DNA from: Bugula neritina
Lineage: Eukaryota > Animalia > Bryozoa
NCBI GenBank assembly: GCA_964035545.1
Contig: OZ037768.1
Span: 16,599,875-16,663,874, forward strand
Length of the DNA stretch: 64,000 nt
Direction: 5' to 3'
Shown here: positions 480 to 50,333 of the stretch, in pieces
Numbering within the stretch: position 1 is the stretch's first letter
How the letters are laid out: every line of letters starts with the position of its first letter
The notes under the pieces: model-generated
Told to the model about the DNA's origin: nothing
The model's input: the letters and a program-made list of their open reading frames with translations, nothing else
Database searches by the model: none
Program-made: the position numbers and the translations under genes

Positions 480-769
480 CTGTTGAACTGACATCTACTG
501 TAGTATGTATTCCTAAAACTTGGAAAGCCTCAGAGATAACTTCAGACAGAGGAACATCAGGTTCTTCTGGTATATAGTTGTCATATACTGTAGCTTCTGT
601 GTTGATAGAGATTTGATTACCAGAATCAATTTTAGGAAATGAAATGACAGAGTTCACTGGTAGAATACTATGATTTTGGGTAAAGTCTTCAAGGGCAACA
701 GGAGCTACCCTCTCAACATTATCCCATAAATGAGTGTCAGATACTGCAGCTGGCATACTGAAAAAGTGT
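480..769 (-). pseudogene. ZNF cluster copy C: 5'-truncated N-terminal-domain exon; finger exon, if any, lies left of the window
   Basis: ORF 466..756 matches the paralogous exon (PEEPDVPLSEVISEAFQVLG). At ~769 the exon joins directly to sequence homologous to ~9655 onward of copy B, so the ATG micro-exon and the exon's 5' part are deleted. Donor reads GCGAGT instead of GTGAGT. Confidence 0.75.
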
Positions 770-1019
770 AGCAGTAGTATATATAAATGCTGATTGAACG
801 ATGGTGATGAAATTAAACTTAAGTCAGAATTATTTTGATCTTAAACTTAATATAATGTTTTAGTTTGTTTTTATCAATACTTGCAAATTTATTGAAAAGA
901 TACAATTTGTGATAGAGATCGCCAATATTAATACTTCAAAGTTCAAAACTCAAATATCACTTGAGTGCTTGATTAGTGTTATTTTTCTCAGCTGAAATGC
1001 ATAAAATACATTCACTTGA

Positions 1020-1325
1020 AAGACCACCAGATGATGGGCTTTATTATACCAAATAACTTGTATATAAAGAATGTCTGGTAAAACCAGCTAATCTTAGTTT
1101 TATACAACAGTAATCTTCATCATCTGAGACTTCTACAATGACTGACATAAAAGGAGATACAACTATATATATTTTTCAAAATCTAAAAATTCTATGTCTG
1201 ATACAAAAGGAAAGACTTGCATAGCTGTGCCCACAGATTCACAGTCACTGCTCACTTCAAGTTCTGTTCCTAACATCTCTGGATACCAAGTCCTCATGCG
1301 TCTTGGATATTTGTTCTGAGACTTC
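1020..1325 (-). pseudogene. Copy of unknown acidic 'SSDCES' exon module (companion family)
   Basis: Translates KSQNKYPRRMRTWYPEMLGTELEVSSDCESVGTAMQVFPFVSDIE...; has a partial internal duplication and an altered acceptor (taag vs ttag in paralogs). Confidence 0.6.
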
Positions 1326-2779: not shown

Positions 2780-3945
2780 GTATTCCTTGTGTGAGTGATA
2801 ATTGAAGGTATTTTATGCATGTTAGGTTTGATGTAGTATAAAATATGTACTAACATAATATTATTTCAATACTGTTAGGCATCTCTGTAAGCCCTTTTCT
2901 TTAAAAACTTTTACTGTACAAAGCATAGCGTTTAAGAAGGTGGATAAAATGAAACAATTGAAAAAATATACTATAACTGCTTGCATACAAAAATAAGTTT
3001 ATTAATTAGATTTATTAGAAAAATGAGCAATTTTAAAGAAGGTTACTATAAGTTTATATCCCGATTTATTGCATTTGCTTTAAACAAATATTAGAAACGC
3101 TGCATTGAACCTCTTCTCTTTTATTCTATATATAGGGGCTTTGCAGCTACTCTTGAAACACGTATAAAAATTGAGCGTATAGAAATGAGCTTATTTTTTT
3201 TGGAAAATTTGAATATTGATGAGTGCATGGTAGAATCTCTCAGAGCTATAAGGATAAGCAAACACAGACAGTTCTCTGCTTCTTCAACTGTTCAAATATA
3301 TACTTTAAAAGAACATCTAAACACTATCTAAAGCCTTAAACAAATTTTATTTTCAATTTTATTTACTGTATTTTGGTTTCTTTACTTCTCAACTGTGTAT
3401 ACAGTCTTTCTACATGTAGCATACCTGTGTGTTCACCATGGAAGTATAAAACTCTCTGAAACTATAGTTAAAAATCTGTCAATATTAAAATCCGACATTG
3501 TAAATCATGAATAGAGAGTTTTTAGTAAACTTTTTTATACAGATATGCAATATGTGTTGCTTTTCTTGCTACAATTATAGAAAAGCAAAAAAATGCTCAA
3601 ACCTTTATTTATTATGAACAATTAGACACACATCATATCAATAAGTTTGCACGAATTGATGGCAACCAACTAAAATATTTATATGTGAAAAAATCTCAAA
3701 AAACTTCCGGCCCAAGTTTAATTTCATCACAATTGTTCAATCAGCATTGTAATATATACCACAGCTAGTGTTTACTGAAAGCTTTTGTAAATAGCCAACA
3801 CAAAACAGTGCTAGAAACTGTTATTTACAGCATTTATCTTGAGAACTATTTAGGTGCAAAGCAAAGCAAAGCTTATGTAAATTTTATTCATGACAACTTT
3901 TTACCATACTTTCTTTGCTCATCAGCTGTGTACGGATCATCTAGC

Positions 3946-5884
3946 ATGTCTGTGTGCCCACCATGTAAGTATAAAATTCTGTAAAACTAGCAAATTTTAT
4001 TTCAATAAATAAAACAACCAGTGTACAACATGTAAAGCCAAACTTTCAGTGAATGTGTTTATATGATTGTAAGTATTGACTTGGTTTTTGTTTGTTGTCT
4101 TGTAGTTGTTAAACATCAAAAGATTCTTGAAACATCTAATCACTATGAGCAAGAAACACGTCATAGCTTTGAACACGGTCTATGGCAATATAATACTGGT
4201 TCAGTGATTTTAAAGACTCTAACTCCAGATACTCAACACTTTTTCAGTATGTCACCTGCAGCATCTGACACTTATTTATGGGATGATGAAGAGAGGGTAA
4301 CTCCTGTTGCCCTTGAAGATTTTGCTCAAAATCATAACATTTTTTCTACTAATTCAGCCATTTCTTTTCCTACAATTGATGCGAAAAATCAAATTTCCAT
4401 CAACACCGAAACTTTAGTATACAATGACTATATACCACAAGAACCTGATGTTCCTCTCTCTGAAGTTATCTCTGAGGCTTTTCAAGTTTTAGGAATGTAT
4501 TCCACAGCAAATTTCAACTCAGCAGGTGAGTGTATTTAAATTTATAATTGAAGTAAAGCCACTAAAGTTTTGCCTTCTCATTAAACACTAAGTGAATTGA
4601 AGCTGTGTGATGATCAAAGAGATAATAATAATCTAAAAATATTTATATTAAATAACATTATTTGATTCAGATTTCTGACTTTAGTAACAATTTTGCGCAA
4701 ACATATGCAGCTGTATCTTATATTTTAATTTGATTCTACTGAAAACACAAAATATTACAATGTAAAAATCAAACATCTTCTGATTTAACAGATCTGGTAG
4801 CTAATTCTGATTCAGAATTTATATTTCAGTATTACTAAAAAAAAGACAGGAGTAGAGGATTGAAGTACATGCATTTTCTTTTTAACTACGTGGCCGAGTT
4901 TAAATGACAAAAAAGTAAAAATTGCAAAACTGATTAGTAGTTCAAAATGCTACTTACTGTATACTTGTATTCACTTGTGTTTTGTAGACGGAGCCCAAAC
5001 CTATATGGATGAAAAAAACATTTCTGGTAGTCTGGTGAATCTATTGAGTAAAGTAGCAGATGAATACAACTTGAACAGAAGTACAGAGAGTTACACTGGT
5101 AATAATGTGCATGTAACTGCAAGTATGTTACTACATGCATGTAGCATATTTGGAGATTCATTCGATCAGACAGAAGATCCAGTGATTCAACCAAATAAAA
5201 ACAGTAACAAGAAAAAACCTGCACACAATATTTGTAAATTTACAAGACAGGTTAGTCTTGCTAAACCTAGACGGTTGCAGGGAATCAAAAAGAAATGCTT
5301 TCAATGTCTGTTATGTAACTACAAAACTGAACGTAAAAATAGTCTTACCCGGCATGTGAGAAGACACACAAATGAGAAGCCATTTGTGTGTAGAGTGTGT
5401 GGACGTGCTTTTACTCGTAGAGATAATCTCACAATACACATGAGAATACATACTGGGGATAAACCATTTCAATATAGTCAATGTGACTACAAGACAGCAC
5501 AGCAAGGTTCTCTCATGAAACACATGGTACTACATAGTGGGGAGAAACCACATGAGTGCAGTGTATGTGACTATAAAACTATATGGAGAAGTAATTTTAA
5601 TCAGCACATGAGAAATCACAATGAAAAGAAACTATATTCGTGCAAAACATGTGACTTCAAATCAGCACAGAAAAGTACTCTCACTTACCACACGAGGACA
5701 CACACAGGAGACAAACCATTTCCGTGCAGTGTATGTGAGTATAAAGCTAGACAAAAAAGTGATCTTAACAAGCACATGAGGACACACAGGAGAGAAGCCA
5801 TTTTACTGTAAACTTTGCAACTACAAGGCTGCTAAGAGGGAATATATCACTTCTCATACGAAAAATCACAATCGAGAAACATAA
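3946..5884 (+). CDS. C2H2 zinc-finger gene copy A (coding exons 3946-3964, 4106-4525, 4988-5884), 7 fingers; frameshift before finger 7 gives a stop at 5811
   Basis: GT-AG junctions with matching phase 1 give MSVCPP-FVKHQKILE...EAFQVLG...DGAQTYMDEK. CX2CX12HX3H fingers with TGEKP-type linkers. Finger 3 has Cys->Tyr. A 2-nt loss in ACACACA at ~5785 shifts the last finger (FYCKLCNYKAAKREYITSHTKNH) out of frame. Confidence 0.85.
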
Positions 5885-7198
5885 AATGCTGATGAATTTT
5901 AAAAATCAACATATACAAACATAATTATGGTCATATACAGTAAAGTTCACAATGTCACAGCAAAAATCACTTTGTTTTCTGTTTTTGGGTCTAGGATGAC
6001 AAGCTCTCTGCTCTTTGATGTTGCCACTTCATATGATACTCTTTAGATTATCAACTTTACGAATGTTCTAATTGTATTTTTAAAGCTACAAGATAAATAT
6101 CCGAAGGATGGATTCTGTTTAACACAAGCAGGAATTATCCTATTTGCATCTGAAACACAAAGCTAACTGAAAAGAACAAATTTTTCTAGTACCCTATAAG
6201 CCATTTTACTATTCTAAATAAATCTATTTGCTATTGCCTATAACCTGCTCTTTACCATCGTGCAAAGTCTTTAGTGATATAACAAACCATGCTTACTAAA
6301 TTTTGGAAAAAATGTTTTAATTTGATGAAAGCAACAAGATCTGAATTATGTGTCACTGAATCTGCAGATTTAGCGACACATAATTCAAATCTTGTTGCTT
6401 TCACCAAATTAAAATATGTTTTCCAACATTTAGTAAGTATTTCAATCGTCTTAGTTTATAGAAGTCTTATCATTCATATTTTAGACGTATATGTATTGTA
6501 TAATAAAATTTCTATTACTTGGCATGGTCCATTAATTTTTATTTTCAATAATATTCTATATTCATAGCATTTTATAATACACAATCATAATATTGAAAAT
6601 AAGTATCCCAAGTGTTTTTTGTTCTAATTCTCTTTTCATAACTATATCATCAACAAAATCGTCATTTGATTTTTAAGCTACAATATCAACATTTCTGACA
6701 ATAAAATTTTAGCTGCTATCCAATCAATATAAACAGTTAGTCGGTTAGTTAATTAATTAGTGTGAGTGAATGGGGCTGTGAGCAAGTGTGTGTGCGTGCG
6801 TGTGTGTGATACCAGCTAAAATTCTATTGCTAAAATTGTTTATATGCCAGCTTAAGAATTGAATATAACATATTAAAAAGAAAATTAGAACCACAAAAAT
6901 TGAGAATACTGATAGATCTAATAAAATGACTGCATATTGTAATGCACTATTAAAAATAATAGTATTAGATAGAGAGCTTAATTGACCAAAAGCAGTATAA
7001 TTTTTTTTAACAAAACATTTATTTTACTTACGAACAATAAGCAGTTTATAAAATATTATTTTTGAAATAATTACTAAATGTTGGTAAAAACTGCCTTAAT
7101 TTGGTAAGATGATTAAGATTTAGATCACATGCTGCTAAATACGAGTGTCATGTCACTAAAAAGTTTGCATAATGGTAAAGAGCTAGTTATAGTCAATA

Positions 7199-7202
<4 letters not shown>

Positions 7203-7248
<46 letters not shown>
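7203..7248. repeat. (TA)n microsatellite
   Basis: Read directly from the sequence. Confidence 0.95.
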
Positions 7249-7251
<3 letters not shown>

Positions 7252-8057
7252 AGCTAAATTGAATAGTGAAAAAATTAGGCTAGCAGAAGTATGTACTTTT
7301 TTCAATTACCTTTCCTAAATGACTTGACTTTAAAAACTGCTATAATCTTCATTTGATACCAGATGAAAGGTTACTGCCAAAATTGTTACTAGTTTTGCTT
7401 TATAATTAGTTAAAAGTTGTGAAAAGTAAGGTAAAGCCTAAAAAACTCAAGAAATTTTTTCAATAAAATGATTGTGTTTGCAGGTATAGAGTAGTATTAG
7501 ATAAAAAATTTAGTTGACAATATAATATTATAACTTTTATTGTACAACACAGTTATCTATAAGCCTATAATGAATAATAACAAATTTATAAAATTCATTA
7601 AAGTAATTACTAAATGTTGGTCAAAAATTGCTTTAGTTTGGTAAAAGCAACGGGATTTGAATCAAGTGTCACTAAAGTATATGGTCTGTTATATCACTGA
7701 AGAAGGTGCATAATAGTAAAGAACTGGTGGTCAATAGTCAACAGATTTATATAGAATGGTAGAATGATTAGGTTACCAAGATTATGTATCTTTTAAATTG
7801 GCTTTGAGTTTTATATGTAAGTATTAGAATTCCTATGTTGAAGTGAATCCAACCTTTATAGTTTTATGTAATGTAGCTTTACGTGCACAGTTATAACGCA
7901 TGTGTACAGTATACAATCAATGTGTAAAGCGCTTCTCATTCTAGACCCTCATTTAAGCCCTAAAGACAGCAAGCAATATAATTTCTATGGTGTTGTGAAA
8001 TCTACTGTAAAAAGCCTTCTGACTCTAAATGTAGATTTAAAAACATAATCATCCACT

Positions 8058-9435
8058 TCATGTTTCACAGTTGTGTTTCTTCATATGAGAAACAAGGTTT
8101 CCTTTCTGAGCAGCCTTGTAATCACATATTTTACAGTGGAATGGTTTCTCTCCAGTGTGTGTTCTCATGTGTATGGTAACATGATGCTTATGAGTAAAAG
8201 CATTACCACAGACTTTGCAGACAAATGGTTTCTCTCCAGTGTGTGTCCTCATGTGCACTGTGAGATTATCTCTTTGATTAAAAGCATGACCACACACTTT
8301 ACAGACAAATGGCTTCTCATTTGTGTGTCTTCTTTTATGTCTATTAAGATTACATTGATATTCAGTTTTGTAGCTACATACAAGACATTGAAAACTTTTC
8401 TTTTCCATGTCCTGAAACTGTCTAGGTTTAGCAGTACTAACCGGTTTTGCAAATCTATATTCACAAATATTATGTACAGGTTTCTTCTGGTTGCTGTTTT
8501 CATTTGATGGAACTACTAGAGCTTCCTGTTGATCAAACACATCTCTAAATATGCTACATGCATGTAATAACATACTGGTAGTCACATGAATATTATCACT
8601 AGTCTGATTCTCTGTAATTCTGTTTGAGTTGTATTTATCTGCTACTTTATTTAATAGGTTCACCAGATTACCAGAAGAGTTTCTTTCATCCAAATACGTT
8701 TGGGTTCTATCTGCAAAATACAAACAAAAACAATTTTATATACAGTAAGTATAGCATTTAGAACTTACTAATCAATTTTCCTTCTTTTATTTTAACATAT
8801 TTATTTATTGATTTTACTTAAATTATAAATTCAGACACACTCACCTGTTGAGTTGACATCTGTTGTGGAATAGTATCCTAGAACTTGAAAAGCCTCAGAG
8901 ATAACTTTAGACAGAGGAGCATCAGAATCTTCTGGTATATTACAGTTTTCATATACTGTAGCTTCTGTGTTGGTAGAGATAGAATTATCTGACTCGATTG
9001 TTGGAAATGAAATGACTGAGTTTACAAGAAGAAAACTATGATTTTCAGTAAAGTCCTCAAGAGTATCAGGAGCTATCCTCTCAACATCATCCCATAAGTG
9101 AGTGTCAGGTATTGCAGCTAGCATACTGAGAAAGTGTTGAGTATCTAGAATCTTTAAAATTACTGAACCAGTATTATATTGCCATACGCCATGTTCAAAG
9201 ATATGATTTGCTTCTTGCTCATCGTGATTAGGTGTTGCAAGAATCTTTTGATGTTCAATAACTACAACACAACAAAGAAAGACCTATCAAATACTTATAC
9301 TAATAATTACAAACGTATTTAATGAAAACTTGTCTCCAAATTTTTTTGTAAAAAATGCGTTTCAATCATTGACATAATTATAATTTACAGGTTTTACAAA
9401 ATGTTATTATACTTACATGGTGGGCTTACCGACAT
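8058..9435 (-). CDS. C2H2 zinc-finger gene copy B (coding exons 9435-9417, 9261-8845, 8710-8058), 4 fingers, apparently intact
   Basis: Canonical GT-AG sites; open frame through MSVSPP-FIEHQKIL...SKVISEAFQVLG...DRTQTYLDER; four complete C2H2 fingers; TGA at 8060-8058. Confidence 0.9.
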
Positions 9436-12400
9436 GCTAGATGATCTGTACACAGCTGATAAGCAAGAATGGGATCTTAAAAAAAATTGTTAAAAATAAA
9501 ATCTACATAAAAATTGCTAGTAAATGTAAACTGAATTAAAAAAAGTTCTACTGTTTATTGTCTAAATACATATATAGTTAACAGTATGAATGACGTAAAT
9601 AAAATTTACTAGCATGGTTTTGTGTTGGCTATAGTTGCAAAGCTTTCAGTAAAAAGCAGCTTTGTTATATTTAAATGCTGCATGATTGAACAATGGTGAT
9701 GAAGTTCAACTTAGGCCAGAATTATTTTGTGAAAAAATAATATGATATTTCAGTTTGGTTTTGCAAATTTATTGCAAAGATAAAATATATGATAGAAAGT
9801 AATATTAAGTTAAATTTGAATTGTAAAGGTTTAAAAACTGAAATTGACACAATTTGATGTTGATTTTTCTCACTTAGAAAAACAATTTGGCGGGTTTTTA
9901 GGTAGCATTTACTTATGCTCTATGCTGGTGAATACTATAGTCTTTTACATCTTTTCTTATGAAAAATAAAATTCTCAATAAAAATTACTAGTAAATGTAA
10001 ACTGAATTAGAAAATTTCTACTGATTTTTGTTGTTGCTATGATGTAATTGTATAGCAAATACGATGGCTGAAGACAAAAAGGCACCATTCAATAACTATG
10101 GGTTATAGTTAAATAATAATAGGATAGAATGCTTTGTGATAGCTTTCCTGTTTATATAGAGATCTGGTAGTCTGCAGTTTGGAGTAGAAGCTGCTTGACT
10201 TGTTGAATTCCAGGGTTAAAGTAAACTGGAAGCTTACCAGTTATTTCTAAAACTTTCTACATATTGTTTGCAATAATTAAATGTTATGCTTTCAACAGTT
10301 ATAAGTAGAATATGTGAATCACATGTGCAATAATAATAACGTGAAGCAGCTTAAAAACATATAGTGATGATTTGAGTGCTACTTTTACAAAATGTTAATT
10401 TTGTTGTACAAACAGAAACAAATATGCTATTTTTGTTGACAAAAAAATGTAGCATTAGCATCATCATAATATAAGGTAAAGTATTTTTGATAATCACTTA
10501 ATTAATTTCAACAATCAAAGTTTGTTGCCATGACTGCAATTGTTTACATTCTTTCAGATTTATTATAACTGTTGTACCATTTAATTTTATAACTGTTTAG
10601 CTGTTGTCTTACTTATTGAGTGATATGCTTTTCAAAATGCAGGTGAGCCATTTTTATATATTGCTATTCTGTGAGCAGAGAAATCAAAACTATAAACATT
10701 TAATATTAGCCACTTTAATTAGTATAAAGAACAAGTGTAGATCAATGTTCATTATGTACAAATGAACTTATAAGCATCTGACTGAGTAACGGGAGGATTA
10801 TTTGAAGAAACTTGTATTAGTTTGTGGGGAAATCTATCATAAGGACGTTTCATCACAGTTAATTGTTGACATGTCTGTGATCAATTGGTTAGCTACACAG
10901 CATTTGTAAAATGATTGAAGATTTTCGTTGATCTTAAGAATTTCATTGTTTACGTTTTTTAGTTCTATAAAACGACTAGGATCATATGCATGTAGATATG
11001 GGCTAAGCTTCCTAAATTGTGACTCTGTAAAACCTGTGAATTAATAACAGTTTGTGCCTAGAAAGAATCTTTACGAAGTTTTTGCTGCTTGAGTACAGTT
11101 GATTAGATAGCTGTTGAGTCTTTTTATTGTTTGATCAATGCAATTATTTTTTTTTACCTAATTTTTAAAATAAATTAAGCTTTTAGTAACCAAACAGGGT
11201 CCAATGGTTTGCTAATATCTATTAAAATTCCTAAGATTAAAGTTTTATAGATAAAAGCTGTGAGAGTATTGTTAGTAAATTCTATCAGCTCTATCATGAT
11301 TGTTTTCTAAAGCCATATTGACTTGCTTTGAATATCCCATTATTTTCCAAAATGTCTATTATTTGTTAATTCATTAGTTTTTCTAACATTCTACTAAAAA
11401 TAGAAAAAATAGAAATATACTTTTAATTTTCTGCGTATTTTGTATAGAACCTGTTATGAACTGGATTGATTCCATGGCACATTTCAGCTTTGATGAAAAA
11501 ATAACTGTTTGTATACAAAAATATATATTTGATATATTTGAAAAATGTTTTGCATGAAATATTATTATTTTTGCCGATGTACTGTGTACTCAAGCTATGA
11601 TGCTAAAACAGCCAGTGCAGTGAGCTCTCATACTCAATCTGTGATCTGAGAGTAGACCTTTGGGGTGCAACAAATAAACATACATGACTTAACATTGCTG
11701 AGTCAAGTTAGCAAGACATATAAAAATATACAAATCATGTTAACTGTAGTAAACAGTTTCTATAAATATTAATAGTCTGAAGGAAACTCATCTTTGACAT
11801 TTGGGATACTTAGTTTATTAGTTAGCTAGAATAGAGATCAAAATGCCAATTCACGGCTCTTTAGCAGTGACTGTATTTGTCTGTTTTGGTTGCCTTCCTT
11901 GACCTTCTCGCCAACTCATATCTTATGGTTAACAGTTAGATTACTTTAGAGGTCAAAATTCAATATCACTTGATTGTTTAGTGTTCTTTCTTTTCAGCTA
12001 AAGTTTTTGAAGTGTATCCACTTAAAACACCACCAAGCAACAAGCTTTATTACACCAAAGAAAGCTGACCTAAGTTACATCTGGTAAAACCAGTTAATCT
12101 TGGTTTTATACAACCATACTTTTCATCATCTGAAACTTCTATGTCTGATATGAAAGGAGAGACTGGCATAGCTGAGCCTACAGATTCCCAGTTACTGCTT
12201 TCTTGACATTCTCTTCTAACCATTTCTGCATGCAGCTAAAAATACATAAAGTGCATCCAATTGCATAAAAAACCACCAAATTATGGGACTTTGTTATATC
12301 AAAAACCTTTTGATATGCTTCAGAAAAGCTGCCAATAGTTCATGATATGCATCCATTTGTAAGACCACCAAATTATGGGCTTTGTTAGACCAAAAGACTT

Positions 12401-22264: not shown

Positions 22265-23109
22265 ACCTATAGAATGATCAAAAGTTGCAGTCATGGTACC
22301 AGGATGACTTATTTCAAAATAGTTCATATCATTTTCAGCTTTAAAAGCATTTTTTAAAGACATAAGAGAAAGAAGCATGGTACTCCTTTTCAATAAATTA
22401 CTTTAAAATGTACAATAAATTGTATTCTTCTATAGTTATTGATGTATTGTACATAAATGACTTAGGTTTGTACTTAACATCATTTGTGCATATCTATTTT
22501 ATTTAATTAAATTGATTAAAAGTTCTTTAAGGGTTTGGTCTTCATTCGAAAACAAGAGTTGAATGAATAAATATTTCCTCCAATGATAATTGACCGGTTT
22601 CAAATAATGGGAGTTGTGTTCACCATTTTATCAATAAAGTCATAGTTGAACTTGTGCTTTTACTCATTCACAATGTGTAAACCGCAGACAACTTAATTTG
22701 TAAGACTATAAACTTACCCAGCCAAGTACTTGGAAATAGTTCAATTGCTATCACCAACCCAAACCCAATATGTTAGAGCTCTTATTGATGCAGAGTCCAG
22801 ATATTTTTCTTCTCGATAATCATATGTATGATAATGGACTGAAGGAAAGTCATATCTGTTGGCCAACAAATAATATATACACATAATTAACTAAAATAGA
22901 CTGCAACACATTTGAGCTAAACAAATATCTGCTGAATTATAATTGTAGTGCCAATGATATAGTTGCAAATGCATATGTTCAAGAAAGCATTAAATATATG
23001 TACATTAACATGTGCATTGTATAATAATTCCATATTTTAGCAACCGTCTAATAAAAATATGTTGTGATAATTATTATTACTAACAGTTTAATAGGAATTC
23101 TAAAATATC

Positions 23110-23569
23110 TTTGTGTTGATAGAAATTGGATTATCCAGATTGATTGTGGGAAACGAAATGACCGAGTTCACAGAAAGAATATTCTGATTTTGAGTAAAGT
23201 CTTCAATGGTGACAGGAGTTACCTTCTCAACATCATCCCATAAATAAGTGTCAGGTACTGCAGCTGACATACTGAGAAAGTGTTGAGTTTCTTTAGTCTT
23301 TAAAATCACTGAACCAGTGTTATATTGCCATACACCATGTTCAAAGATATGATTTGTTTCTTGCTCATAGTGATTAGGTGTTGCAAGAATTGCTTGATGT
23401 TCAATAACTACAACACAGCAAAGACTTATTAGATATTTATACTTATATAATTATAGACGCATTTACTTAAGTCTTGTTTCCACATGTTGTACACTGTTTA
23501 TAATTATTTAGTGACATATAATTTAAAGTTTTACATAATTTTATACTTACACAGTGGACACAAAGACAT
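23110..23569 (-). pseudogene. ZNF cluster copy D: micro-exon (23569-23551) and N-terminal exon (from 23407) truncated at ~23110; no finger exon
   Basis: MSLCPL micro-exon; ORF 23100..23309 loses homology after ISINTK; no C2H2 sequence between 23100 and the next unit. Confidence 0.8.
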
Positions 23570-26241
23570 GCTAGATGATCTGTACACAGCTGATAAGCAT
23601 GAATTGGATCTTAAAAAAAAAGTTGTTAAAAATAAAGTCTACATAAAAATTGCTAGTAAATGTAAACTGAATTAAAAAAAGTTCTACTGTTTATTATCTA
23701 AATACATATATAGTTTACAGCATGAATGATGTAAATAAAATTTACTAGCTTTGTTTTGTGTTGGCTATATAGTTGCAAAGCTTTCAGTAAAAAGCAGCTG
23801 TGTTATATTTAAATGCTGCATGATTGAACAATGGTGATAAAGGTTAACTTAGGCCAGAATTATTTTGTGAATAAATAATATGATATTTCAGTTTGGTTTT
23901 GCTAATTTATTGCAAAGATAAAATATATGATAGAAAGTAATATTAAGTTAAATTTGAATTGTAAAGGTTTAAAAACTGAAATTGACACAATTTGATGTTG
24001 ATTTTTCTCACTTAGAAAAACAAATTGGCGGGTTTTTAGGTAGCATTTACGTATGCTATGCTGTTGAATACTAGCCCTTTACATCTTTTTTTCTGAAAAA
24101 TAAAATTCTCAATAGAAATTACTAATAAATGTAAAATAAATTAGAAAAGTTCTACTGATTTTTGTTGTTGCTAGGATCTAATTGTATAGCAAATACAATG
24201 GCTGAATACAAAAAGGTACCTTTCAATAACTATAGGTTATGGTTGGATGATAATAAGATAGAATGCTTTACAGCGATAATTTTCCTGTTTATATAGAGAA
24301 CTGGTTGTCTGCAGTTTAGAGTAAAAACTGCATGACTTGTTGAATTTCAGGGTTAAAGTAAAATAGAAGCTTGTCAGTTATTTCTAAAATTTTCTACATC
24401 TTGTTTGCAATAATTAAATGTTATGCTTTTAACAGTTATAAGTAGAATATGTGACTCACATGTGCAATAATAATAACGTGAAACAGCTTAAAAACTTAGT
24501 GATGGTTTGAGTGCTAATTTTACAAAATGTTAATTTTGGTGTACAAACAGAAACAAATATGCTATTTTTGTTGACAAAAGGAATGTAACATTAGCATAAT
24601 CATATAAAATAGAGTAGTTTTGATAATATCTAAATTAATTTCAACAATCAAAGTTTGTTGCTATGACTGCCATTGTTTACATTCTGATTGTTGTACTTAT
24701 GTTAAACTTTGTTCAAAAGAAATTCTGCTGCTAAATTCTTTCCAGCTCTTCAGCAGATTTATTAAAACTATTGTACAATTCGATTTTATAACTGTTTAGC
24801 TGCTGTCTTACTTATTGTGTGATTTGCTCTTCAAAATGCAGGTGAGCCATTTTTATATATTGCTATTCTGTGAGCAGATAAATCAAAACTATAAACATTT
24901 AATCACATTAATCACTTTAATCATTTTAATTAGTATAAAAAACAAGTGTATATCAATGTTCATTATGTGCAAATGAACTTATAAGCATCTGACTGAGTAA
25001 CGGGAGGATTAATTGAAGAAACTTGTGTTAAGTTTGCGTGGAAATCTATTCTGAGGATGTTTCACCACAGTTAATTGTTGACATGTCTGTGATCAATTGG
25101 TTAGCTACACAACATTTGTAAAATAATTGAAGATTTTCGTTTATCTTAAGAATTTCATTGTTTACGTTTTTTGGTTCTATAAAACAACTAGGATCATATG
25201 CATGTAGATATGGGCTAGGCTTCCTAAACTGTGACTCTGTAAAACCTGTGAATTAATAATAGTTTGTGCCTAGAAAGAATCTTTATGAGGTTTTTCTCGC
25301 TTGAGTACAGTTGATTAGATAGCTTTTGAGTCTCTTCATTGTTTTATCAATGCAATTATTTTTTTTAACTTTTAAAATAAACTAAACTTTTAGTAACCAA
25401 ACAGGGTCCAATGGTTTGCTAATATCTATTAAAATTCCTAAAATTAAAGTTCTATAGATAAAAGCTGTGAGAGTATTGTTAGTAAATTGTATCAGCTCTA
25501 TCAATATTATTTTCTAAAGCCATATTGATTTGCTTTGAATAGCTCATTATTTTTCAAAATGTCTATTATTTGTTAATTCATTAGTTTTTCTAACATTCTA
25601 CTAAAAATAGAAAAAATAGAAATATACCTGTAATTTTCTGCAGATATCATAGAACCTGTTTAAAACCAGATTTATTCTTGGACATTTCAGTTTTGATAAA
25701 AAAATAGCTGTTTGTATACAAAGATATTTTTGCAAAATGTTTTGCATGAAATATTATTATTTTTGCTGATATACTATGTACTCAAGCTATGATGCTAAAA
25801 CTTCCAGTGCAGTGAGCTCTCATACTCAATCTGTGATCTGAGAGTAGATGTTTGTGGTGCAACAGATAAACATACATGAAATAACATTGCTGAGTCAACT
25901 TAACAAGACATATAAAAATATACACATCATGTTAACTGTAGTGAACAGTTTTTATAAATATTAATAGTCTGAAGGAAACTCATCTTTGATATTTGGGATA
26001 CTTAGTTTATTAGTTAGCTAATATAGAGATCAAAATGTCAATTCACGGCTCTTTAGCAGTGACTGTATTTGTCTGTTTTGGTTGCCTTCCTTGACCTTCT
26101 CGCCAACTCATATCTTTTGGTTAACAGTTAGATTACTTTAAAGATCAAAATTCAATATCACTTGATTGTTTAGTGTTCTTTCTTTTCAGCTGAAGTTTTT
26201 GAAGAGTATTCACTTAAAACACCACCAAGCAACAAGCTTTA

Positions 26242-29906: not shown

Positions 29907-30192
<286 letters not shown>

Positions 30193-41800: not shown

Positions 41801-42536
41801 TGCATTTTGCCGATTTTCGTACGCATACCATTTTTCCGTGCGATTTACTTCAAGTTTGGACAATATAAGGACGTCGAAATTTATGAATCTACAAAATACA
41901 CTAAATGACGTTACAGAAAATGCTTGTTTGAAAGATTTTACTGTATTCAAACATCGGGTTACATCCTTGTGAAGTTAGGCGAATTTTCACATTTTCTTCA
42001 CTTTAGGTGTCTATATCTCGGAAAATATTATTTTCAAAATTACACAAATTAAGGAGTATAAAGTAACCATAATAAACTATTTATGGATAAAAATTTATGG
42101 AAGTAAAATAAAAATTAACGCCTTTTGTGATGTGGCAAATATTCGAAATTTTTCAAAATTCATAAAAATTTGCCAATATTCAATGGCTTAGCATATATGC
42201 ACACAAAGTATTATGCAGTATGTGTTATTACTAGTGCAAATTGATAGGTGTTATCAAATCGCACACCAAATTTTAAGGCTCAGTCTGGAAAAATAATGGA
42301 GATATGGACGTTTACAAATTGGTCTAAAAGTAAAAATCGCAAATTTTCCTCAAAATTTTTCCCAACCTTTGTTCATGGAAATATTCATTTCTCAAAAAGT
42401 TTTTGTGTCAGGCCAGAAATATTCAAGAATAGCACTCAAGACATGTGTAGGTCCATTTGGTGTAAATATGAACAAAATCTGAGACGCAAAGGCGTGGGAC
42501 TTTCTGAAATTTGGTTGATTTGACACGGAATGACCC
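38818..42536. mobile_element. Non-autonomous DNA transposon, Sola2-like, ~1.14-kb TIRs, 4-bp TSD CAAT
   Basis: GGGTCATTCC...GGAATGACCC termini; CAAT at 38814-38817 and 42537-42540; the empty site in paralogs reads CAGCAATGTT. Arms 38818-~39954 and ~41391-42536 are near-identical inverted copies. Internal fragments KVQLLTLAPESWTIDKTSIEFGV and YLAQQAKRLQKE resemble Sola2 transposase. Confidence 0.85.
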
Positions 42537-43904
42537 CAATGCAAAGTCATGAACCCTTATCTGTTGCACCCCAAAGGTCTACTTTCAGATCACAGATTGA
42601 GTATGAGAGCTCACTGCACTGGCTGTTTTAGCTTCATAGCTTGAGTACACAATATTTCAGCAAAAGTAATAAAGTAGCATGAACATTTTGCAAAACTATC
42701 TTGTGTTTTATATAATTGAAGTATACAAGCAGCTATTTTTTCATCAAAACTGAAATGTGCCAGAAACAATCAGGTTTACTACAGGTTCTATGAAATCTGA
42801 AGAAAATTGCAAGCATATTTCTATTTTTTCTATTTTTAGTGGAATGTTAGAAAAACTAAAATAGTAAAAAATAATAGACATTTTGGAAAATAGTGAGTTA
42901 TTAGAAGGAAATTATTATAACTTTAGAAAAAAAATTATGATATAGCTGATAACATTTACTAACAATACTCTCACAGCTTTTATTTATAGAAGTTCAATTT
43001 CAGGAATTTTAATAGATTATAGAGAACCATTTAACCCTGTTGACCACAAACCTTCATTTTATAATTTAAAAAAAATAATTGCAGTGATGGAACAATAAAA
43101 AGACTCAAAAGCTATCTAATCAACTGTACTCAAGTGACAAAAAATTTAAGAAGATTTCTTTTGGGCATAAACAGTTATTAGTTCGCAGATTTTACAGAGT
43201 CACAATTTAGGAAGTCTAACCCATATATCTATGCAGACGTTACTGGTCGTTTTATAAAACCAAAAGACATAAACATTGTATTCTCAAGATTACCAAAAAT
43301 CGCCAATCATTTTACAAATTTTGAGTAACTAACCAATTGATCACAGACATGCCAACAATTAACTGAAATGAAATGTCCTCAGAATAGAATTAATACAGTT
43401 TTCTTCAAGTAATCTTCTCTTTACTCAATCAAATACTTATAGGTTCTTTTGCACATATTGTACATTGATCTACAATTGTTATTTATACTAACTACATTAT
43501 TTTTATAAAGACTAAAAAGTGTTGTGTTTGAGGGGTTAATATTGAATGTTTATAGTTTTGATTTATCTGCTCACAGAATAAAAATCGCTCACCTGCATTC
43601 TGAAGAGCAAATCGCACAATAAGTAAGTAGCTATACAGTTAAAAAGTATTCAACAGTATAACAAACATAAATTTATGCTATCACTGATCAATCATGCAGC
43701 ATTTGCATGAATATAACTCAGCTGCTTTTTACTGAAAGCTTTTTCAAATATAGCCAACACTACACGGCTGCCGGTAAACGTTATTTACATCATTCATACT
43801 GTGAGCTATTTAGACAAAAAACATAGTAAAATTTATGTAGATTTTATTTTCAATAACTTTTTACTATACTTTTTTGCTCATCAGCTGTGTACAGATCATC
43901 TAGC

Positions 43905-46900
43905 ATGTCGGTTTGTCCACCATGTAAGTATAATAACATTTTGTAAAACCCGATAATTATATGTCAATAATGGAAATGAACTTTTTACAAAATTTGGAGA
44001 CAAGTTTTCATTAAATCTGTTAGTAATTATTAGTATAAGCATTTGATAGGTCTTTCTTTGTTGTGTTGTAGTTATTGAGCATCAAAAGATTCTTGAAACA
44101 CCCAACCACTATGAGCAAGAAACAAGCCATATCTTTGAACATGGCGTATGGCAATATAACACTGGTTTAGTGACTTCAATGACTCCAGATACTCAACACT
44201 TTTTCAGTATGCCAGCTGCAGTACCTGACGCTCACTTATGGGATGATGTTGAGAGGGTAACTCCTGTCACCTTTGAAGACTTCACTCAAAGTTATAATAG
44301 TCTTCCTGTAAACTCAGTCATTTCCTTTCCTACAATCAATTCGGATAATCATATCTCAATCAACACGAAAGCTACAGTATATGACAACTATAATATACCA
44401 GAAGAACCTGATGTTCCTCTGTCTGAAGTTATCTCTGAGGCTTTTCAGGTTTTAGGAATGCATAATGAAGCAGATGGCAGTTCAATAGGTGAGTGTGTTT
44501 AAGTTGATAAAAGCAAAATCATCAAATCTTTCCCTTCACAGACAAAGTAAATTGATCAATCCATGGAATACCGGTGAATCTCTATTCCCGCAGCACCAAC
44601 ACCTGCATTCTTTGTATGCTTAGATCACACGCGTGTACTCTCTGCTTTAGTGATTGTTTAATTGTTAATGCTGAAGTAAGCATAATGCAATCTATATGGC
44701 ATGATTAGATTCACTATGGCATCCGGAGTCGACGTAGTCGGGTTCCCTGAATGCAAATTCGGGAGCTCAACTTTGCTGATTAAACTTTTCTTGAATTTTG
44801 GATGCCCTGAATCATTTCATTTGGTGGGTTCGAGTGTCTGCTGGTTGCCCAATTTGGATGAAGCATTTTACTGATATATAAGTAAGGTCAGATGCCTCAG
44901 CCAGTCAATTAAACTGGAACTGCACCTAGTAATGTTCTATTATCTATACATTTATATGTGACTATAATTGCCTTTTTGCAATTATACTGTTTGAAGAGTC
45001 AAACCTGGGCTCTGTAATAAGCAGATCTGCAGTACATCACAACTGACTGACACTTCCCGTCTTCTTTTTATTTCATTACAAAGAGTTGTTATGTTCTGGG
45101 CAAAGTAATATAAGAACTCTCACAACCCCCACTAGCAATTTTACTCTCTGCAATTCAACTACAATACAAAATTTTGGTGGTGGTAATTCTGAGATTCTAA
45201 GAGATAATTTGCTCCTAAACAAAAGAAGACACAGCAAAGCCTTGGACGGAGGTGATCGCCATATTGCGGCTGAGATGGTTGTTCCCTAGGGCCTAGTAGA
45301 AGAGGAGCAAACTCTACTACAGGCTGCCATCCTGGTCCTCCACATAGGACAGGCTGAATAGGCACTACCTGTCAACTGGCACCATCTTTAGGCTCCGGTC
45401 TTCAGCAGAGAAGGGGGCAGAGAAATTAATTACAGCCTTGAGTAATGTGGCGGCCGTTTCCAAAAATCTCTCTCATGTGGCACTCTTACACCTGTGGTCT
45501 TGTTTAACGTATTGGGCTAAACTCTGCAGGGTAGAAGCCAATGCAGACACTATCTTTGGGTGCTGTGATTCTAGTTTGGAACTGAGGCTCGAACTTAAGG
45601 TGCCTCTACAGAAGCATGCGACCCGGGTGGAGCGGTTGGTCCAGAGTGTTCATAATAATTTTGATAAGGCTAGCAGGAAGATTCTGTTGCTTTCAAAGCA
45701 TTCTTACAGTTATTTAGCAGCCTGGGACTACAGCCCCACGCATTGCAGCTAAGATTGAGACTGGGAAAAGGACTCTTAAATAATGGGAGACATATTTTTG
45801 GCTAGCTGATGTCACAAACAAGCAAACAAACAAACAAACTTGAATGATGCTGCCTGTGACAGCTGTACGAGCACCAAGTAGCACCTGGTGATGGAGCAGG
45901 GGCTAAGACATAGGCCTTACCAAGGTCATCGGCCTAAAAATTCTTCTGGCTGACAAGATGATTTTGAGAAGACAACCGACTCACAGACTGGCTTAGAAGA
46001 AATTGAGCCGTCAGGGGCAACACAGTTTAAACCAGGACCTGATCTGCAATACATAGAGATCTCCAGTTGTTCTGGTCTGGAAAAAGATGGCAGCTGTAGA
46101 TTGTGCAAGAATTGTCGCAAAATTAACAACATGACCATCCAGGATGTTTGCCCCTCTCTCTGGTAAATGAGTCGCCAGATGCCCGGCACATTCTTTAGCT
46201 CATTGGAGCTGCTGAGCGCATACTGGCAAACACCTATCAGTTTTGATGACTAAGAAAAGGCAGCAAAAGGTATTGCAGTTTGAGCTGACATCCATTCTGG
46301 CTACCTCCCAACGACTCACGAAACATCCTCAGAGGTTTACACTAAAAGTCACTGCTCATCTATCTCAAAGATGTCATCGTGACCTCCCCATGCGTCAGCT
46401 TTCCATTTGTCTGCCCCCATCAGGGGGTTAGATGCTGTTATATTTTGATCTTCTAGCTTTATTCTGTGTATATTTACATATTACAAAATTTTATAGTTGT
46501 AAGAAACATAGTGGCAAATTTATCTGACAAATGCACATCGTTTTTGTGTACGAAACTACTAGTAATAAATGCCATTATATTAATCAAATCTCATTTTATT
46601 TCTTCTAATGTCTACGCTCTAGATTTATTTCTATAGAGCACTCTAGTAACGTTTTATAAACACTCATTTTACTATTTTACGCTCCTTTAAGTAGAGCACT
46701 CTATTTATAAACTGCAAAATGGAACAACTAAGATTTGATTATTCAACTATGAATATACCGATTCCATCACAATCACTGTATATACGGAGACTGATCCAAT
46801 ACACAGAATCTTTAGTCATCAGAATGAGATGGGCTGCCTTCTTCTTCCTAAATCCTGACTCTAGATCTAGCATGAAGGAAACTTATGGATTCAGGTCTAA

Positions 46901-49900
46901 AAAGTCCCCACCACAGATCACAGCTATGCAAAGTTTCGAACAAGGATTAGCTGACATGATCCGATCTGTTAAGTTTAGACATGTCCACAATACTTTTCAA
47001 GACAAGCTATCCTCCGACATCAAGCATAAAATAACCATGAGCGACAATATAATAGTGCCTGCAGACAAAAGCAACAATTTCTACAAAATGGACAAAGAAT
47101 CGTATGACAGACTCTTAACTAACAACATCACTAAAACCTATAAGAAAATATCAAATGACAAAGTCTCCAACATCACTAGTGAGAACAAAGCCATGGCTGA
47201 ACAATTGGAACTTGATGACAGAATTACTATAACAGCTAAGAAACCCGCCTTCATTACTATCAAGGATCATAAGGCTAACTACATAACTAACCCCACCTGC
47301 CGCCTTATTAACCCCACTAAACCAGAGATAGGTAGGGTGAGTAAACAACTACTTGACAGAATTAATACATCGATAAACAGCAAACTTGGCCTAAGTCAGT
47401 GGAAAAGCACATCTGCAGTTTTACATTGGTTTGACAATTTGACCACCACAAACAGGCACTCTTTTATCGTGTTCGATATTGTGGAATTTTATCCATCTAT
47501 ATCGCCAAAGCTACTATCTGATGCTCTCGACTTTGCCAACTTGCATACTACAGTCAGCAACCATGAACGGAATATCATATTGCACACAAAAAAATCCATA
47601 TTGGTGCATGACAACTCATTTTGGGGTAAAAGGCAATCAGATAATTTGTTTGACGTCACTATGGGCTCACATGATGGTGCTGAAACATGTGAATTAGTAG
47701 GATTATTTTTGTTAAGTACAATCTCAAAAAAGTTCAAAGCTAACATTGGACTATATCGAGACGATGGGCTAGGTGTAACAGATCTTAAACCACAACTAGC
47801 TGAAAAACTGAAAAAAGATCTTTGCATATTATTCCAGTCACACGGTCTAAAGATCACCATAGATGTAAATATTAAGACAACTGACTATTTAGATGTCACC
47901 CTAGATCTGGTCAAGAAACATCATACACCATACTCCAAGCCCAACAACATCCCTCTGTATGTACACAAAGACTCTAACCATCTTCCCAGCATACTGAAAA
48001 ACATACCAGAATCTATAAACCGCAGACTTTGTGACATATCTACCAATGAAACTATCTTCAACAATGCCACCCCACTATATCAAGATGCTTTGGCTAAAAG
48101 CGGATATGACTACCAACTCAAATACAAAGACTATACTGACAACACCAATACAAGCATCAAACCCATCAGACAAAGACAAGTCATCTGGTACAATCCACCT
48201 TATAGCCGCAATGTAAAGACGAAAATCGGCTCCATATACCTCAAGCTGATAAAAGATATATTCAACACCAAACACCCACTGCACAAAATATTTAATAAAA
48301 ACACACTCAAACTCAGCTACAGTTGCTGCCCAAATTTAGAGCAGACCATCACTGCTCACAACAAAAGTGTTACTAAATGCAACACCACCCCTATATCACA
48401 GGCAGGCTGTAACTGTAGAAATGTAAAGACATGCCCGCTCCCAGGAGAATGCACCACCCCAAACATTGTGTACCAGGCCAAAGTATCCGTCTCATCAAAA
48501 GATACTGCCGAAACATATATAGGAATTTCCTCCACTGCATTCAAGGCAAGATATTACAAATACCTTGCTTCTTTCAGACACCCAACCAAGCGCATGCAAA
48601 CTGAGTTGAGCAAACACATCTGGACCTTAAAAGACAAAGGTCTGGATTTTACCATATCCTGGAAAATTCTCAGAAAAGCTCAACCATACAACAACAACAC
48701 TAAAATCTGTCAGCTATGCTCATGGGAAAAATTTTTCATTCTTTATAAGCCACAGTTGTCTTCCCTCAATAAGCGCTATGACTTTTTATCCATATGCAGA
48801 CATGGTAGTAAATTTTTACTCAAGAATGCTGTAACATAGCCAATTAATTACAATGCTACCTCTTTGTTGTATTTTGATCTTCTAGCTTTAATCTGTGTAT
48901 ATTTACATATTACATTATTTATAGTTGTAAGCAATCATAGTGGCTAATTTATCTGACGAGTGCACATCGTTCTTGTGTACGAAACTACTAGTAATAAATG
49001 CCATTATATTAATCAAATCTCATTTTATTTCTTCTAATGTCTACGCTCTAGATTTATTTCTATAGAGCACTCTAGTAACGTTTTATAAACACTCATTTTA
49101 TTATATATATATATATATATACAGGAGCAAGAGATCCAAATACATGTGTTGTCTTTTTCAACTACAAAAATGAAATTACATAACAGCAACTATTTTATGT
49201 AAAAGTAAAAACTAAAACAATCGTTAAAAAGTTGTAAGTGCTACTTATATTGCTTTTTTGTGTTTTGTAGATGGAGAACAAACTTATTGGAATGAAAGAA
49301 ACACTTTTGATAGTCTGGTGAATCTATTGAGTAAAGGAGCAGATGAATACAACTCCAACAGAATTACAGAAAATCACACTAGTAATAATATGCATGTGAC
49401 TGCAAGTATGCTGCTACATGCATGTAGCATACTTGAAGACTCTTTTGATCAAAAGGAAAATCTAGATATTCCAGCAAGTAATAAAAGTAACCAGGGAAAA
49501 CCTGTACACGATATTGGTGAATATGAATTTACAAATCAAGTTAGTCTTTCTACACCTAGACATTTGCAGGACACCAAAAAGAATGGTTTTCAACGCCTTC
49601 AATGTAATTACAAAACAAAACATGAAAATAGTCTTACCAAACACATGAGAACACACAGAGACAAGAAGCGATATGAATGTAAAGTGTGTGGTCACGCTTC
49701 TAGCCATAAAAGCAGTCTCACAGTGCACATGAGAATACATACTGGGGAGAAACCATTTCAATGTGATCAATGTGACTACAAGACAGCACAGCAAGGTTCT
49801 CTCATGAAACACATAAAAACACATACTGGTGAAAAACCACATGAGTGCAGTGTATGTGAATATAAAACTGGAAACAAAAGTAATCTTAGTCAACACATGA

Positions 49901-50333
49901 GAATACACACTGGAAATAAACTATTCTCATGTAAGTTTTGTAAAAAGAACTTTGCTTCTAAAGGTAACATGAAAACTCACATGAGAACACACACAGGAGA
50001 CAAACCATTTGTTTGTGAAATTTGCGGTTATGCTTCTACTCACAAGAGTCATTTAAACAGACACATGAAAACACACACAGGAGACAAACCATTTGTTTGT
50101 GAAATTTGTGGTTATGCTTCTACTCACAAGAGTCATTTAACAGACACATGAAAACACACACAAGAGACAAACCATTTGCGTGCAGTGTATGCGACTATAA
50201 GGCCAAACAAAAAGTTCATCTTAGCAATCACATTAGAATACATACTGGAGAAAATCCATTCCACTGTAAACTATGCGACTACAAGGCTGCTCGGAAAGTA
50301 TATCTTGTTTCTCACATGAAGAAACACAACTGA
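43905..50333 (+). CDS. C2H2 zinc-finger gene copy E (coding exons 43905-43923, 44072-44488, 49271-50333), 9 fingers; 1-nt deletion at ~50140 in finger 7
   Basis: Same phase-1 exon structure as A and B; 4.8-kb TE-filled intron; finger 1 Cys->Arg; ORFs 49258..50151 and 50106..50333 join across the frameshift. Confidence 0.85.
45990..46330 (+). mobile_element. Heavily decayed Gypsy RT fragment in the intron of copy E (GC-richer remnant probably extends ~45230-46430)
   Basis: Broken motifs KKDGSCRLC...KINNMTIQDV and YWQTPISFDD*EKAA parallel the RT at 33170-33380. Confidence 0.55.
46509..46577 (+). ncRNA. Degenerate hammerhead ribozyme in the 5' terminal repeat
   Basis: Same fold as the 3' copy, but the core reads CTGACAA (G8->A) and the first stem II pair is mismatched. 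Confidence 0.7.
46719..48839 (+). CDS. Penelope-type reverse transcriptase + GIY-YIG endonuclease, intact 706 aa
   Basis: PADKSNN, FDIVEFYPSI, MGSHDGAE, YRDDG, YLDVTL; linker CNCRNVKTCPLPGEC; NIVYQ...TYIG...FKARY; CQLC...CRH. Confidence 0.93.
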   Translation: MEQLRFDYSTMNIPIPSQSLYIRRLIQYTESLVIRMRWAAFFFLNPDSRSSMKETYGFRSKKSPPQITAMQSFEQGLADMIRSVKFRHVHNTFQDKLSSDIKHKITMSDNIIVPADKSNNFYKMDKESYDRLLTNNITKTYKKISNDKVSNITSENKAMAEQLELDDRITITAKKPAFITIKDHKANYITNPTCRLINPTKPEIGRVSKQLLDRINTSINSKLGLSQWKSTSAVLHWFDNLTTTNRHSFIVFDIVEFYPSISPKLLSDALDFANLHTTVSNHERNIILHTKKSILVHDNSFWGKRQSDNLFDVTMGSHDGAETCELVGLFLLSTISKKFKANIGLYRDDGLGVTDLKPQLAEKLKKDLCILFQSHGLKITIDVNIKTTDYLDVTLDLVKKHHTPYSKPNNIPLYVHKDSNHLPSILKNIPESINRRLCDISTNETIFNNATPLYQDALAKSGYDYQLKYKDYTDNTNTSIKPIRQRQVIWYNPPYSRNVKTKIGSIYLKLIKDIFNTKHPLHKIFNKNTLKLSYSCCPNLEQTITAHNKSVTKCNTTPISQAGCNCRNVKTCPLPGECTTPNIVYQAKVSVSSKDTAETYIGISSTAFKARYYKYLASFRHPTKRMQTELSKHIWTLKDKGLDFTISWKILRKAQPYNNNTKICQLCSWEKFFILYKPQLSSLNKRYDFLSICRHGSKFLLKNAVT
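48938..49006 (+). ncRNA. Type I minimal hammerhead ribozyme in the 3' terminal repeat
   Basis: Stem I ATTTAT/ATAAAT extended by TAGTGGC/GCCATTA; core CTGACGA; stem II GTGCACA/TGTGTAC; GAAA; 3-bp stem III ACT/AGT; cleavage triplet GTA ending at 48993. Confidence 0.88.

Follow-up and report, generated by a model that had tools for sequence, protein, structure and literature searches.

A clustered zinc-finger gene family of the bryozoan Bugula neritina with a separately encoded, probably effector-type acidic N-terminus

Zinc-finger (ZNF) families with a private N-terminus, such as the KRAB, ZAD, SCAN and FiNZ families, are the main known route by which animals obtain fast-evolving, sequence-specific regulators that are often aimed at transposons. 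A stretch of 64,000 nucleotides of the Bugula neritina genome (GCA_964035545.1, contig OZ037768.1, positions 16,599,875 to 16,663,874; the whole of it is called the window here) raises the question of whether a bryozoan has such a family of its own. An earlier note on this DNA described an unrecognised domain, a KRAB analogue and a transposon-recognition system, a description that overstates what the sequence supports. The explanation favoured here, with somewhat better than even confidence, is a Bugula-restricted subfamily of C2H2 zinc-finger genes in a tandem and inverted cluster, whose proteins would carry an N-terminal acidic effector tail with putative docking helices.

The genes follow one plan of three exons. 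With the exons of gene E as query, tblastn finds in the window exactly five copies of an exon of about 140 codons, here called the N-exon (copies A, B, C, D and E), and exactly three last exons (A, B and E). The earlier note ascribed this exon to five paralogs and saw a shared micro-exon that it took to be missing from C; the N-exon is indeed present in five, and the micro-exon in four (A, B, C and E), with D lacking it. The micro-exon of C, which had been taken as deleted, is retained at 23569-23551 and encodes MSLCPL. In all four copies this exon comprises 19 nt, an ATG and 16 further nucleotides, ending in phase 1 before GTAAGT. The N-exon starts mid-codon behind a pyrimidine tract and AG, and ends in ...CAG/GTGAGT (the slash marks the splice point), again in phase 1. 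The last exon is preceded by TTTTGTAG or TTTTGCAG, and its first two bases finish an Asp codon. As the junctions of A, B and E all have the form AG/.../GTAAGT or GTGAGT with matching phases, the reading frame is continuous over the three exons. The N-exon is thus separately encoded, as had been claimed, with splice sites and phases compatible with joining it to variable finger arrays. All motifs listed by the earlier note lie where it placed them, and its N-exon coordinates for A, B and E (4106-4525, 9261-8845 and 44072-44488) are exact; a direct translation of these stretches meets stops simply owing to their mid-codon start. The parts of the genes are as follows.

3921..3964, plus strand: gene A, conserved 5' block (ATCAGCTGTGTAC.GATCATCTAGC) and micro-exon (MSVCPP, 19 nt, phase 1, then GTAAGT)
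3946-3964, plus strand: gene A, micro-exon itself, ATG..CCACCAT
4106..4525, plus strand: gene A, N-exon, 139 codons and 3 split-codon bases; core motif at 4414-4494
4988..5884, plus strand: gene A, last exon, with the pre-finger helices (LVNLLSKVADEYN, VTASMLLHACSI) followed by the fingers
9417..9460, minus strand: gene B, conserved 5' block and micro-exon (MSVSPP; micro-exon 9435-9417)
8845..9261, minus strand: gene B, N-exon; core motif at 8876-8959, partly degenerate (EDSDAPLSKV)
8058..8710, minus strand: gene B, last exon, with pre-finger helices and 4 fingers; stop TGA at 8060-8058
23551..23594, minus strand: copy C, conserved 5' block and micro-exon (MSLCPL, GTAAGT donor; micro-exon 23569-23551)
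23100..23407, minus strand: copy C, truncated N-exon
480..769, minus strand: copy D, 3' two-thirds of the N-exon; core motif at 511-591
43880..43923, plus strand: gene E, conserved 5' block and micro-exon (MSVCPP; micro-exon 43905-43923)
44072..44488, plus strand: gene E, N-exon; core motif at 44374-44457
49271..50333, plus strand: gene E, last exon, with pre-finger helices and 9 fingers

The start codon lies at the end of a 28-nt block that occurs four times, against zero occurrences expected, which excludes chance. This block (ATCAGCTGTGTACAGATCATCTAGCATG, which includes a CAGCTG E-box) lies at 3921-3948, 9433-9460 (minus strand), 23567-23594 (minus strand) and 43880-43907, and with zero or one mismatch across the four copies it outdoes the coding exons in conservation. 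Two further blocks, ATAGCCAACAC and ACTGAAAGC, are common to the copies about 130-170 nt upstream. Together, these blocks are likely to be the core promoter and 5' untranslated region.

The last exons encode canonical C2H2 fingers, with Pfam matches in all three to zf-H2C2_2 (E=1e-28 to 4e-49) and zf-C2H2 (E=8e-18 to 1e-31), and no Pfam match beyond C2H2. The fingers are of the Krueppel type, being tandem C-x2-C-x12-H-x3-H units joined by TGEKP-like linkers. Genes A, B and E have 7, 4 and 9 fingers, the numbers given before, when degenerate and out-of-frame fingers are counted. Gene A has six in-frame fingers, one with a Cys to Tyr change; the first finger of gene E lacks a Cys, and another of its fingers is a very recent tandem duplicate. 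The copies themselves have been duplicated and inverted: A and B are inverted copies lying tail-to-tail, D and A lie head-to-head, and B and C have a common 4.6-kb upstream block with 88-90% identity. Such a cluster is typical of the birth-and-death evolution of zinc-finger genes.

Further copies (given L numbers) were drawn from two Joint Genome Institute (JGI) samples, one containing the exact NCBI B. neritina protein and the second having the same contig-name prefix, and from Logan assemblies. The divergent members L004, L006, L009 and L010 have the ATG micro-exon with its GTAAGT donor, and in L004, L009 and L010, where both junctions were read, the N-exon ends in a G/GTGAGT donor and the last exon has an ACAG/AT acceptor. 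In every relative long enough (L002, L004, L009 and L010) there is a last exon with 4-12 fingers. The family thus extends beyond this locus, and since divergent members have the same exon plan and finger arrays, the link between this N-terminus and zinc fingers is family-wide. Intron 1 of L004 carries an insertion of about 200 nt, in which ARAGORN detected no tRNA.

The N-exons fall into three well-supported groups in a tree: L004 with L009 and L010; L006; and a star-like group in which L001/L012 and L002 join the five window copies. Amino-acid identity between the divergent groups and the window copies is only about 41-46%, and synonymous sites are saturated between subfamilies (synonymous divergence, dS, about 1), which makes the link to fingers an old one. 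L002 (assembly GCA_010799875.2) matches parts of the window in collinear order, with 80-91% DNA identity, and one gene takes the place of the B-to-E segment of the window; this may be the orthologous region in a sibling species or else a paralogous segment within one genome. The distinct copies known so far number about eleven, which is a minimum. The cluster had been called expanding, and duplications are indeed seen, but the five copies here and a mere six clusters at 90% identity among 5.8 billion proteins suggest a small family, and many of its copies are broken.

Searches and structure predictions were run exon by exon, with the frameshifted genes taken as separate pieces. Pfam-A (hmmscan) gave no match for ten N-exons at E up to 0.1, nor for the five of the window at E up to 1. 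Specifically, KRAB (PF01352) matched neither the N-exons and last exons of the window nor the ten-exon set, and there was no Pfam match to zf-AD (PF07776), SCAN (PF02023) or BTB/POZ. The alignment of the N-exons has no conserved cysteines, and their profile matched no chain in the PDB, even at E=10. That KRAB, ZAD and SCAN would find no match here was therefore correctly foreseen. Against 1.84 billion representative proteins the profile had four matches, all short single-exon fragments; as no length filter was applied, longer fusions would have shown up. The only named relative is KAF6037386.1, a hypothetical protein of 78 residues from Bugula neritina that is encoded on the L002 contig. The pre-finger part of the last exon of E (residues 1-105) had no relative in a protein search, and metagenome contigs, in a collection evidently without Bugula samples, had no match to the profile or to a 35-nt degenerate motif pattern. 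Literature searches gave no account of this sequence or of any bryozoan zinc-finger family. These results agree with the proposal of a lineage-restricted subfamily, and the restriction to Bugula appears to hold as far as the data reach.

The N-terminal region resembles a tail more than a domain. AlphaFold2, run on the ten-sequence N-exon alignment, gave a mean pLDDT (predicted local distance difference test) of 49 and a pTM (predicted template modelling score) of 0.13, with the helix SEVISEAFQVL as the sole element; for the pre-finger segment it predicted a pair of low-confidence helices (pLDDT 50-60) that do not form a compact fold. The "unrecognised N-terminal domain" of the earlier note is therefore undescribed, as stated, but a folded domain finds no support in a pLDDT of 49 and one short helix. 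All seven N-exons tested have a net charge of -13 to -19 and 18-33 W/F/Y/L residues, and S/T/N/Q/P/G/D/E/K make up 55-64% of their residues, an acidic composition that is kept despite the low identity between subfamilies. A few short elements are kept family-wide as well. These are the exon start (V/I-E/D-H/Q-Q-x-I/V-L/F...NH), DTQ..L.MP..V.DTYL further into the N-exon, and a PhixxPhiPhi helix (LVNLL, LVDTI or LIDAI) that opens the last exon, as SLVNLLSK.ADEY in the window and as NLVDTIFKMADDY and NLIDAIFKKVDE in other members. LVNLL matches at 1933 and 13520 are chance matches within an unrelated repeat. Of the two conserved pre-finger helices reported for A, B and E, both are present in these genes, but the second (VTASMLLHACSI) is restricted to the subfamily of the window.

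The strongest conservation lies at the end of the N-exon, in a core motif of about 27 residues that is almost invariant, TVYDNY(I/L)PEEPDVPLSEVISEAFQVLG, the second half of which is an amphipathic helix. Between subfamilies, nonsynonymous divergence (dN) is 0.05-0.28 in the 27 codons of this motif, compared to 0.41-0.65 in the first ~100 codons. The DNA of the motif is 77-94% identical between subfamilies, against about 57% elsewhere, and this conservation ends at the splice donor; the stretch comprises the motif sites of A, B, D and E in the window, 2598-2681 of L004 and the matching part of L006 and L010. Third-position identity in the motif is 0.85-0.96, against about 0.55 elsewhere. At sites with identical amino acids the same codon is used in 85-96% of cases in the motif and in 52-77% outside it, with per-pair p values from 0.004 to 1, so that the excess of synonymous conservation over that of the amino acids is only modest. 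An RNA-level cause finds no support (fold z-score -0.13; Rfam empty in the window).

In the explanation favoured here, duplications and inversions would make the copies, in which fingers are gained, lost and duplicated and DNA-contact residues change fastest, and many copies would then decay. The N-terminal region would serve as an effector tail, not as a folded domain, so that its sequence may drift while its acidic-plus-hydrophobic composition stays. The fingers would bind DNA, and the short conserved helices may dock a transcriptional cofactor. Acidic activation domains such as those of VP16, CITED2 and p53 (AD1, activation domain 1) are similarly disordered and negatively charged, with W/F/Y/L set among D/E (PMC10550315); LWDDVERV, FEDF and SEVISEAFQVL are examples in the Bugula tail, where composition is likewise conserved as sequence drifts. 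The composition leans slightly toward an activation-type tail, and either activation or repression is possible.

Several results weigh against this explanation. A published rule for acidic activation domains takes a tile of 39 residues with a charge of -9 or lower, W+F+Y+L of at least 7, and (charge+9)-(WFYL-10) <= 0 (PMC10550315). No tile in the seven N-exons passes, the closest diagonal value being +2; the best tiles, with charge -8 and WFYL 9 or charge -9 and WFYL 7, are near-misses like unphosphorylated p53 AD1 (PMC10550315). Furthermore, the AlphaFold2 alignments held 10 and 6 sequences, so that a novel fold might be missed, and such shallow alignments make the predictions weak evidence against a fold, although the composition agrees with disorder. 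Within the subfamily of the window, the N-exon is barely better conserved than intron 1 and its dN/dS is 0.35-0.86, and in the B-E pair intron 1 is even more similar (92% identity) than the N-exon (84%), which suggests that much of the N-exon is near-neutral or scrambled by gene conversion. The claim of a conserved N-terminus thus stands strongly for the motif of about 27 residues, but weakly for the rest of the exon. In addition, the core motif is degraded in B, the sole fully intact copy of the window. Finally, none of the databases searched has a transcript or spliced protein with the N-exon, so splicing and expression are predictions from the DNA.

A different possibility, which we consider unlikely but worth some weight, is that these genes encode transposon repressors in the style of KRAB or FiNZ, with the core motif recruiting HP1 (through PDVPL, as PxVxL) or Sin3 (through its helix) and the fingers tracking transposons. 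The architecture and cluster dynamics are like those of KRAB- and FiNZ-ZNFs, transposons are inserted within and near the genes, and finger contact residues diverge fastest. In each of the five pairs compared, positions -1, 2, 3 and 6 vary more than the remaining non-structural positions of the fingers (dN 0.17-0.59 versus 0.11-0.23), bearing out the variation that the earlier note saw in the recognition helices; yet the excess is individually significant in the B-E pair only (p=0.002), and the family looks small, not one of hundreds of genes.

The case for HP1 begins with PDVPL, a match to the strict PxVxL pentamer. Ten copies retain this region, and PDVPL is present in 7 of them (A, D, E, L001, L004, L009 and L010); L006 has PDIPL, and both forms fit the pentamer core P/L/C - x - V/I - x - L/I/V, which is lost in B (SDAPL) and L002 (TDVPL). 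The pentamer alone is uninformative, as the bare pattern is present in more than half of all proteins (PMC12526061). In Drosophila, an HP1a-binding motif works only when its flanks are basic, and acidic or aromatic residues next to it are disfavoured (PMC12526061). The flanks of the core here are instead strongly acidic (YIPEEPDVPLSEVISE), with Y-I-P-E-E on one side, S-E-V-I-S-E on the other and D at -1, and so do not follow this flank grammar. The Mad-type Sin3-interaction domain, which binds the paired amphipathic helix (PAH) domain of Sin3, is an amphipathic helix of the pattern Phi-Z-Z-Phi-Phi-x-A-A-x-x-Phi. Judged by eye against this pattern, neither SEVISEAFQVL nor LVNLLSKVADEY fits, since neither has the paired Ala in register, and the PAH-type docking helix proposed in the earlier note finds no support in this rough comparison. 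It is more doubtful still that bryozoans evolved an independent KRAB/FiNZ-like system, in which a Bugula-specific acidic module would use its invariant PDVPLSEVISEAFQVLG helix to bring a chromatin cofactor (HP1, Sin3 or a coactivator) to a rapidly diversifying finger array that follows transposon families.

The likeness of the copies might also reflect nothing more than recent duplication and gene conversion in a decaying cluster with little or no present function. Among the window copies, B alone has an uninterrupted frame through all three exons. In gene A, 2 nt are missing from an (AC)n / ACACAC run near 5795, which leads to an in-frame stop at 5809-5811 and leaves its last (seventh) finger, with its stop at 5882-5884, out of frame. 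Gene E has lost 1 nt near 50140, in the second copy of the freshly duplicated finger, resulting in a stop at 50149-50151, with the last two fingers and the original stop (50331-50333) in another frame. Both frameshifts are read from one assembly and may be genuine losses or assembly errors. In copy C, homology of the N-exon stops after ...ISINTK near 23112, with a stop codon at 23102-23100, and both the core motif and a finger exon are absent downstream. Copy D lacks the first third of the N-exon (the break is at 769), intron 1, the micro-exon and part of the promoter, and has a GC donor instead of GT; its finger exon, if any, lies beyond the start of the window. C and D are truncated pseudogenes. 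Outside the window, the L002 gene is dead (ATG to ATA, donor GT to GA and a TAG inside the core motif), and L009 and probably L004 are frameshifted. The dN/dS values of up to 0.86, the introns of the B-E and B-L002 pairs, conserved as much as the exon or more, and the want of transcripts point the same way. Against decay, the frames of B and L010 are intact, and three subfamilies with saturated dS keep the exon structure, the phases, the acidic composition and the 27-residue motif, which requires long-term purifying selection on at least some members. A cluster without function is improbable.

That the conserved helix is a localisation or self-association signal (CRM1 export or dimerisation) and not a transcriptional effector is very unlikely: ISEAFQVLG followed by M, L or I does fit, by eye, the class-1a export pattern Phi-x3-Phi-x2-Phi-x-Phi, and the SCAN, ZAD and BTB N-terminal modules of other ZNF families dimerise, but such patterns are common in any amphipathic helix, and a dimer would have little to build on in one helix of about 11 residues within a disordered acidic tail.

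The window is AT-rich, with about 30% GC and GC-rich insertions, and the statement that the cluster contains transposable elements is correct, with one in intron 2 of E and another between C and E.

46436..49104, plus strand: retroelement in intron 2 of gene E, 2.7 kb, recognised by motifs, with no match in Pfam or the PDB

This element has an intact open reading frame (ORF) of 714 codons (46695-48836) with FDIVEFYPSI and YRDDG, which are like motifs of reverse transcriptase, and with GIY-YIG-like motifs. Direct repeats of 240 bp with 95% identity lie on either side of it, and the matching intron of L002 lacks the element. From these motifs, we take it to be a young Penelope-like retroelement. 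Between C and E, at 30809-37550, lies a Ty3/Gypsy element in fragments, with matches to aspartyl protease, RVT_1, integrase zinc-binding and rve, many frame breaks and 44-54% GC against the 30% GC background. Long terminal repeats were sought around it and none were found. Its relatives are a 66%-identical copy at 15995-18922 of L002 and a remnant at 51855-52196 of the window. A (TG)n microsatellite of about 1.2 kb (28460-29700), followed by about 350 bp of (TA)n/(TATG)n-type repeats (29850-30210), abuts this fragment. In L004, an ORF of 617 codons at 5485-7335 (called gene 5521-7338) has a precomputed Pfam match to the Mutator family; the divergent zinc-finger gene of this contig ends about 1.2 kb upstream of it, another case of a transposon neighbouring a family gene.

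A repeat of about 0.5 kb, which encodes a conserved acidic peptide (GRELEESSDCESV..SAMPVSPFVSDIEVSDDEKYGC) with no Pfam match, accompanies several of the genes.

12323-12652, minus strand: acidic-peptide repeat
26387-27078, minus strand: acidic-peptide repeat
19843-20307, minus strand: acidic-peptide repeat
932-1451: acidic-peptide repeat
38062-38494, plus strand: acidic-peptide repeat
6495-6928 of L002: acidic-peptide repeat

Copies with the orientation of the gene are found 3-5 kb upstream of B, C, E and the L002 gene. The two extra copies are beside D (932-1451) and at 19843-20307, where no gene follows downstream. That its ORF is a diverged N-exon was ruled out (BLASTP E=0.19; hhalign probability 0.1%), and the repeat may represent an upstream exon, a small gene in its own right or a piece of a transposon that was copied with each duplication. 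Also upstream of E, inverted repeats at 38806-40133 and 41187-42549 (1.36 kb, 93% identity, about 1 kb apart) enclose a smaller inverted pair (40126-40421 and 40621-40910); this is a foldback-type element or a palindromic duplication. Downstream of the cluster, at 55762-56539, there is a tandem array with units of about 75-100 bp and self-matches of 86-94%.

Compared by published description only, FiNZ may be the closest known analogue in kind. FiNZ is a Glu-rich N-terminal sequence of 28 amino acids, without known homology, in zinc-finger genes of cyprinids (PMC10547256). As in Bugula, FiNZ-ZNFs are a lineage-restricted poly-zinc-finger family with a short acidic N-terminus unlike known domains, and with clustered genes that vary in their finger arrays and contact residues (PMC10547256). 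There are about 700 copies in zebrafish, however, compared to about a dozen in Bugula, and FiNZ genes are expressed at genome activation and their knock-down de-represses transposons (PMC10547256), whereas the Bugula family is known from its DNA alone. The Bugula motif differs further in that it ends an acidic tail of about 140 residues, for which there is a dedicated exon, and in that the finger exon adds another short helix. The hosts of FiNZ are fish, another phylum, and no fish protein is among the four matches in 1.84 billion.

The KRAB-ZNFs of tetrapods likewise have a separately encoded N-terminal effector, a last exon that bears all fingers, and tandem birth-and-death clusters that contain transposons. 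KRAB, however, is a defined module of about 75 residues that binds TRIM28, whereas the Bugula N-exon has no match to the KRAB model, is mostly predicted to be disordered and is conserved over only about 27 residues. Similarly, the ZAD-ZNFs of insects are a lineage-specific, clustered C2H2 expansion in an invertebrate with a family-specific N-terminus. ZAD is a folded, zinc-binding (four-Cys) dimerisation domain, unlike the Bugula N-exon, which has neither conserved cysteines nor a zf-AD match.

In the literature searched, no bryozoan zinc-finger family with a private N-terminal module is described. What B. neritina offers at present is a well-defined, unannotated gene family with a testable candidate motif, while the system itself is only proposed. 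With about a dozen genes, the family is small enough to be experimentally tractable. Should the helix prove to dock a cofactor, it would be a compact new effector motif and a further independent origin of this architecture; should a KRAB/FiNZ-like system prove true, Lophotrochozoa would gain their first described effector module of this sort.

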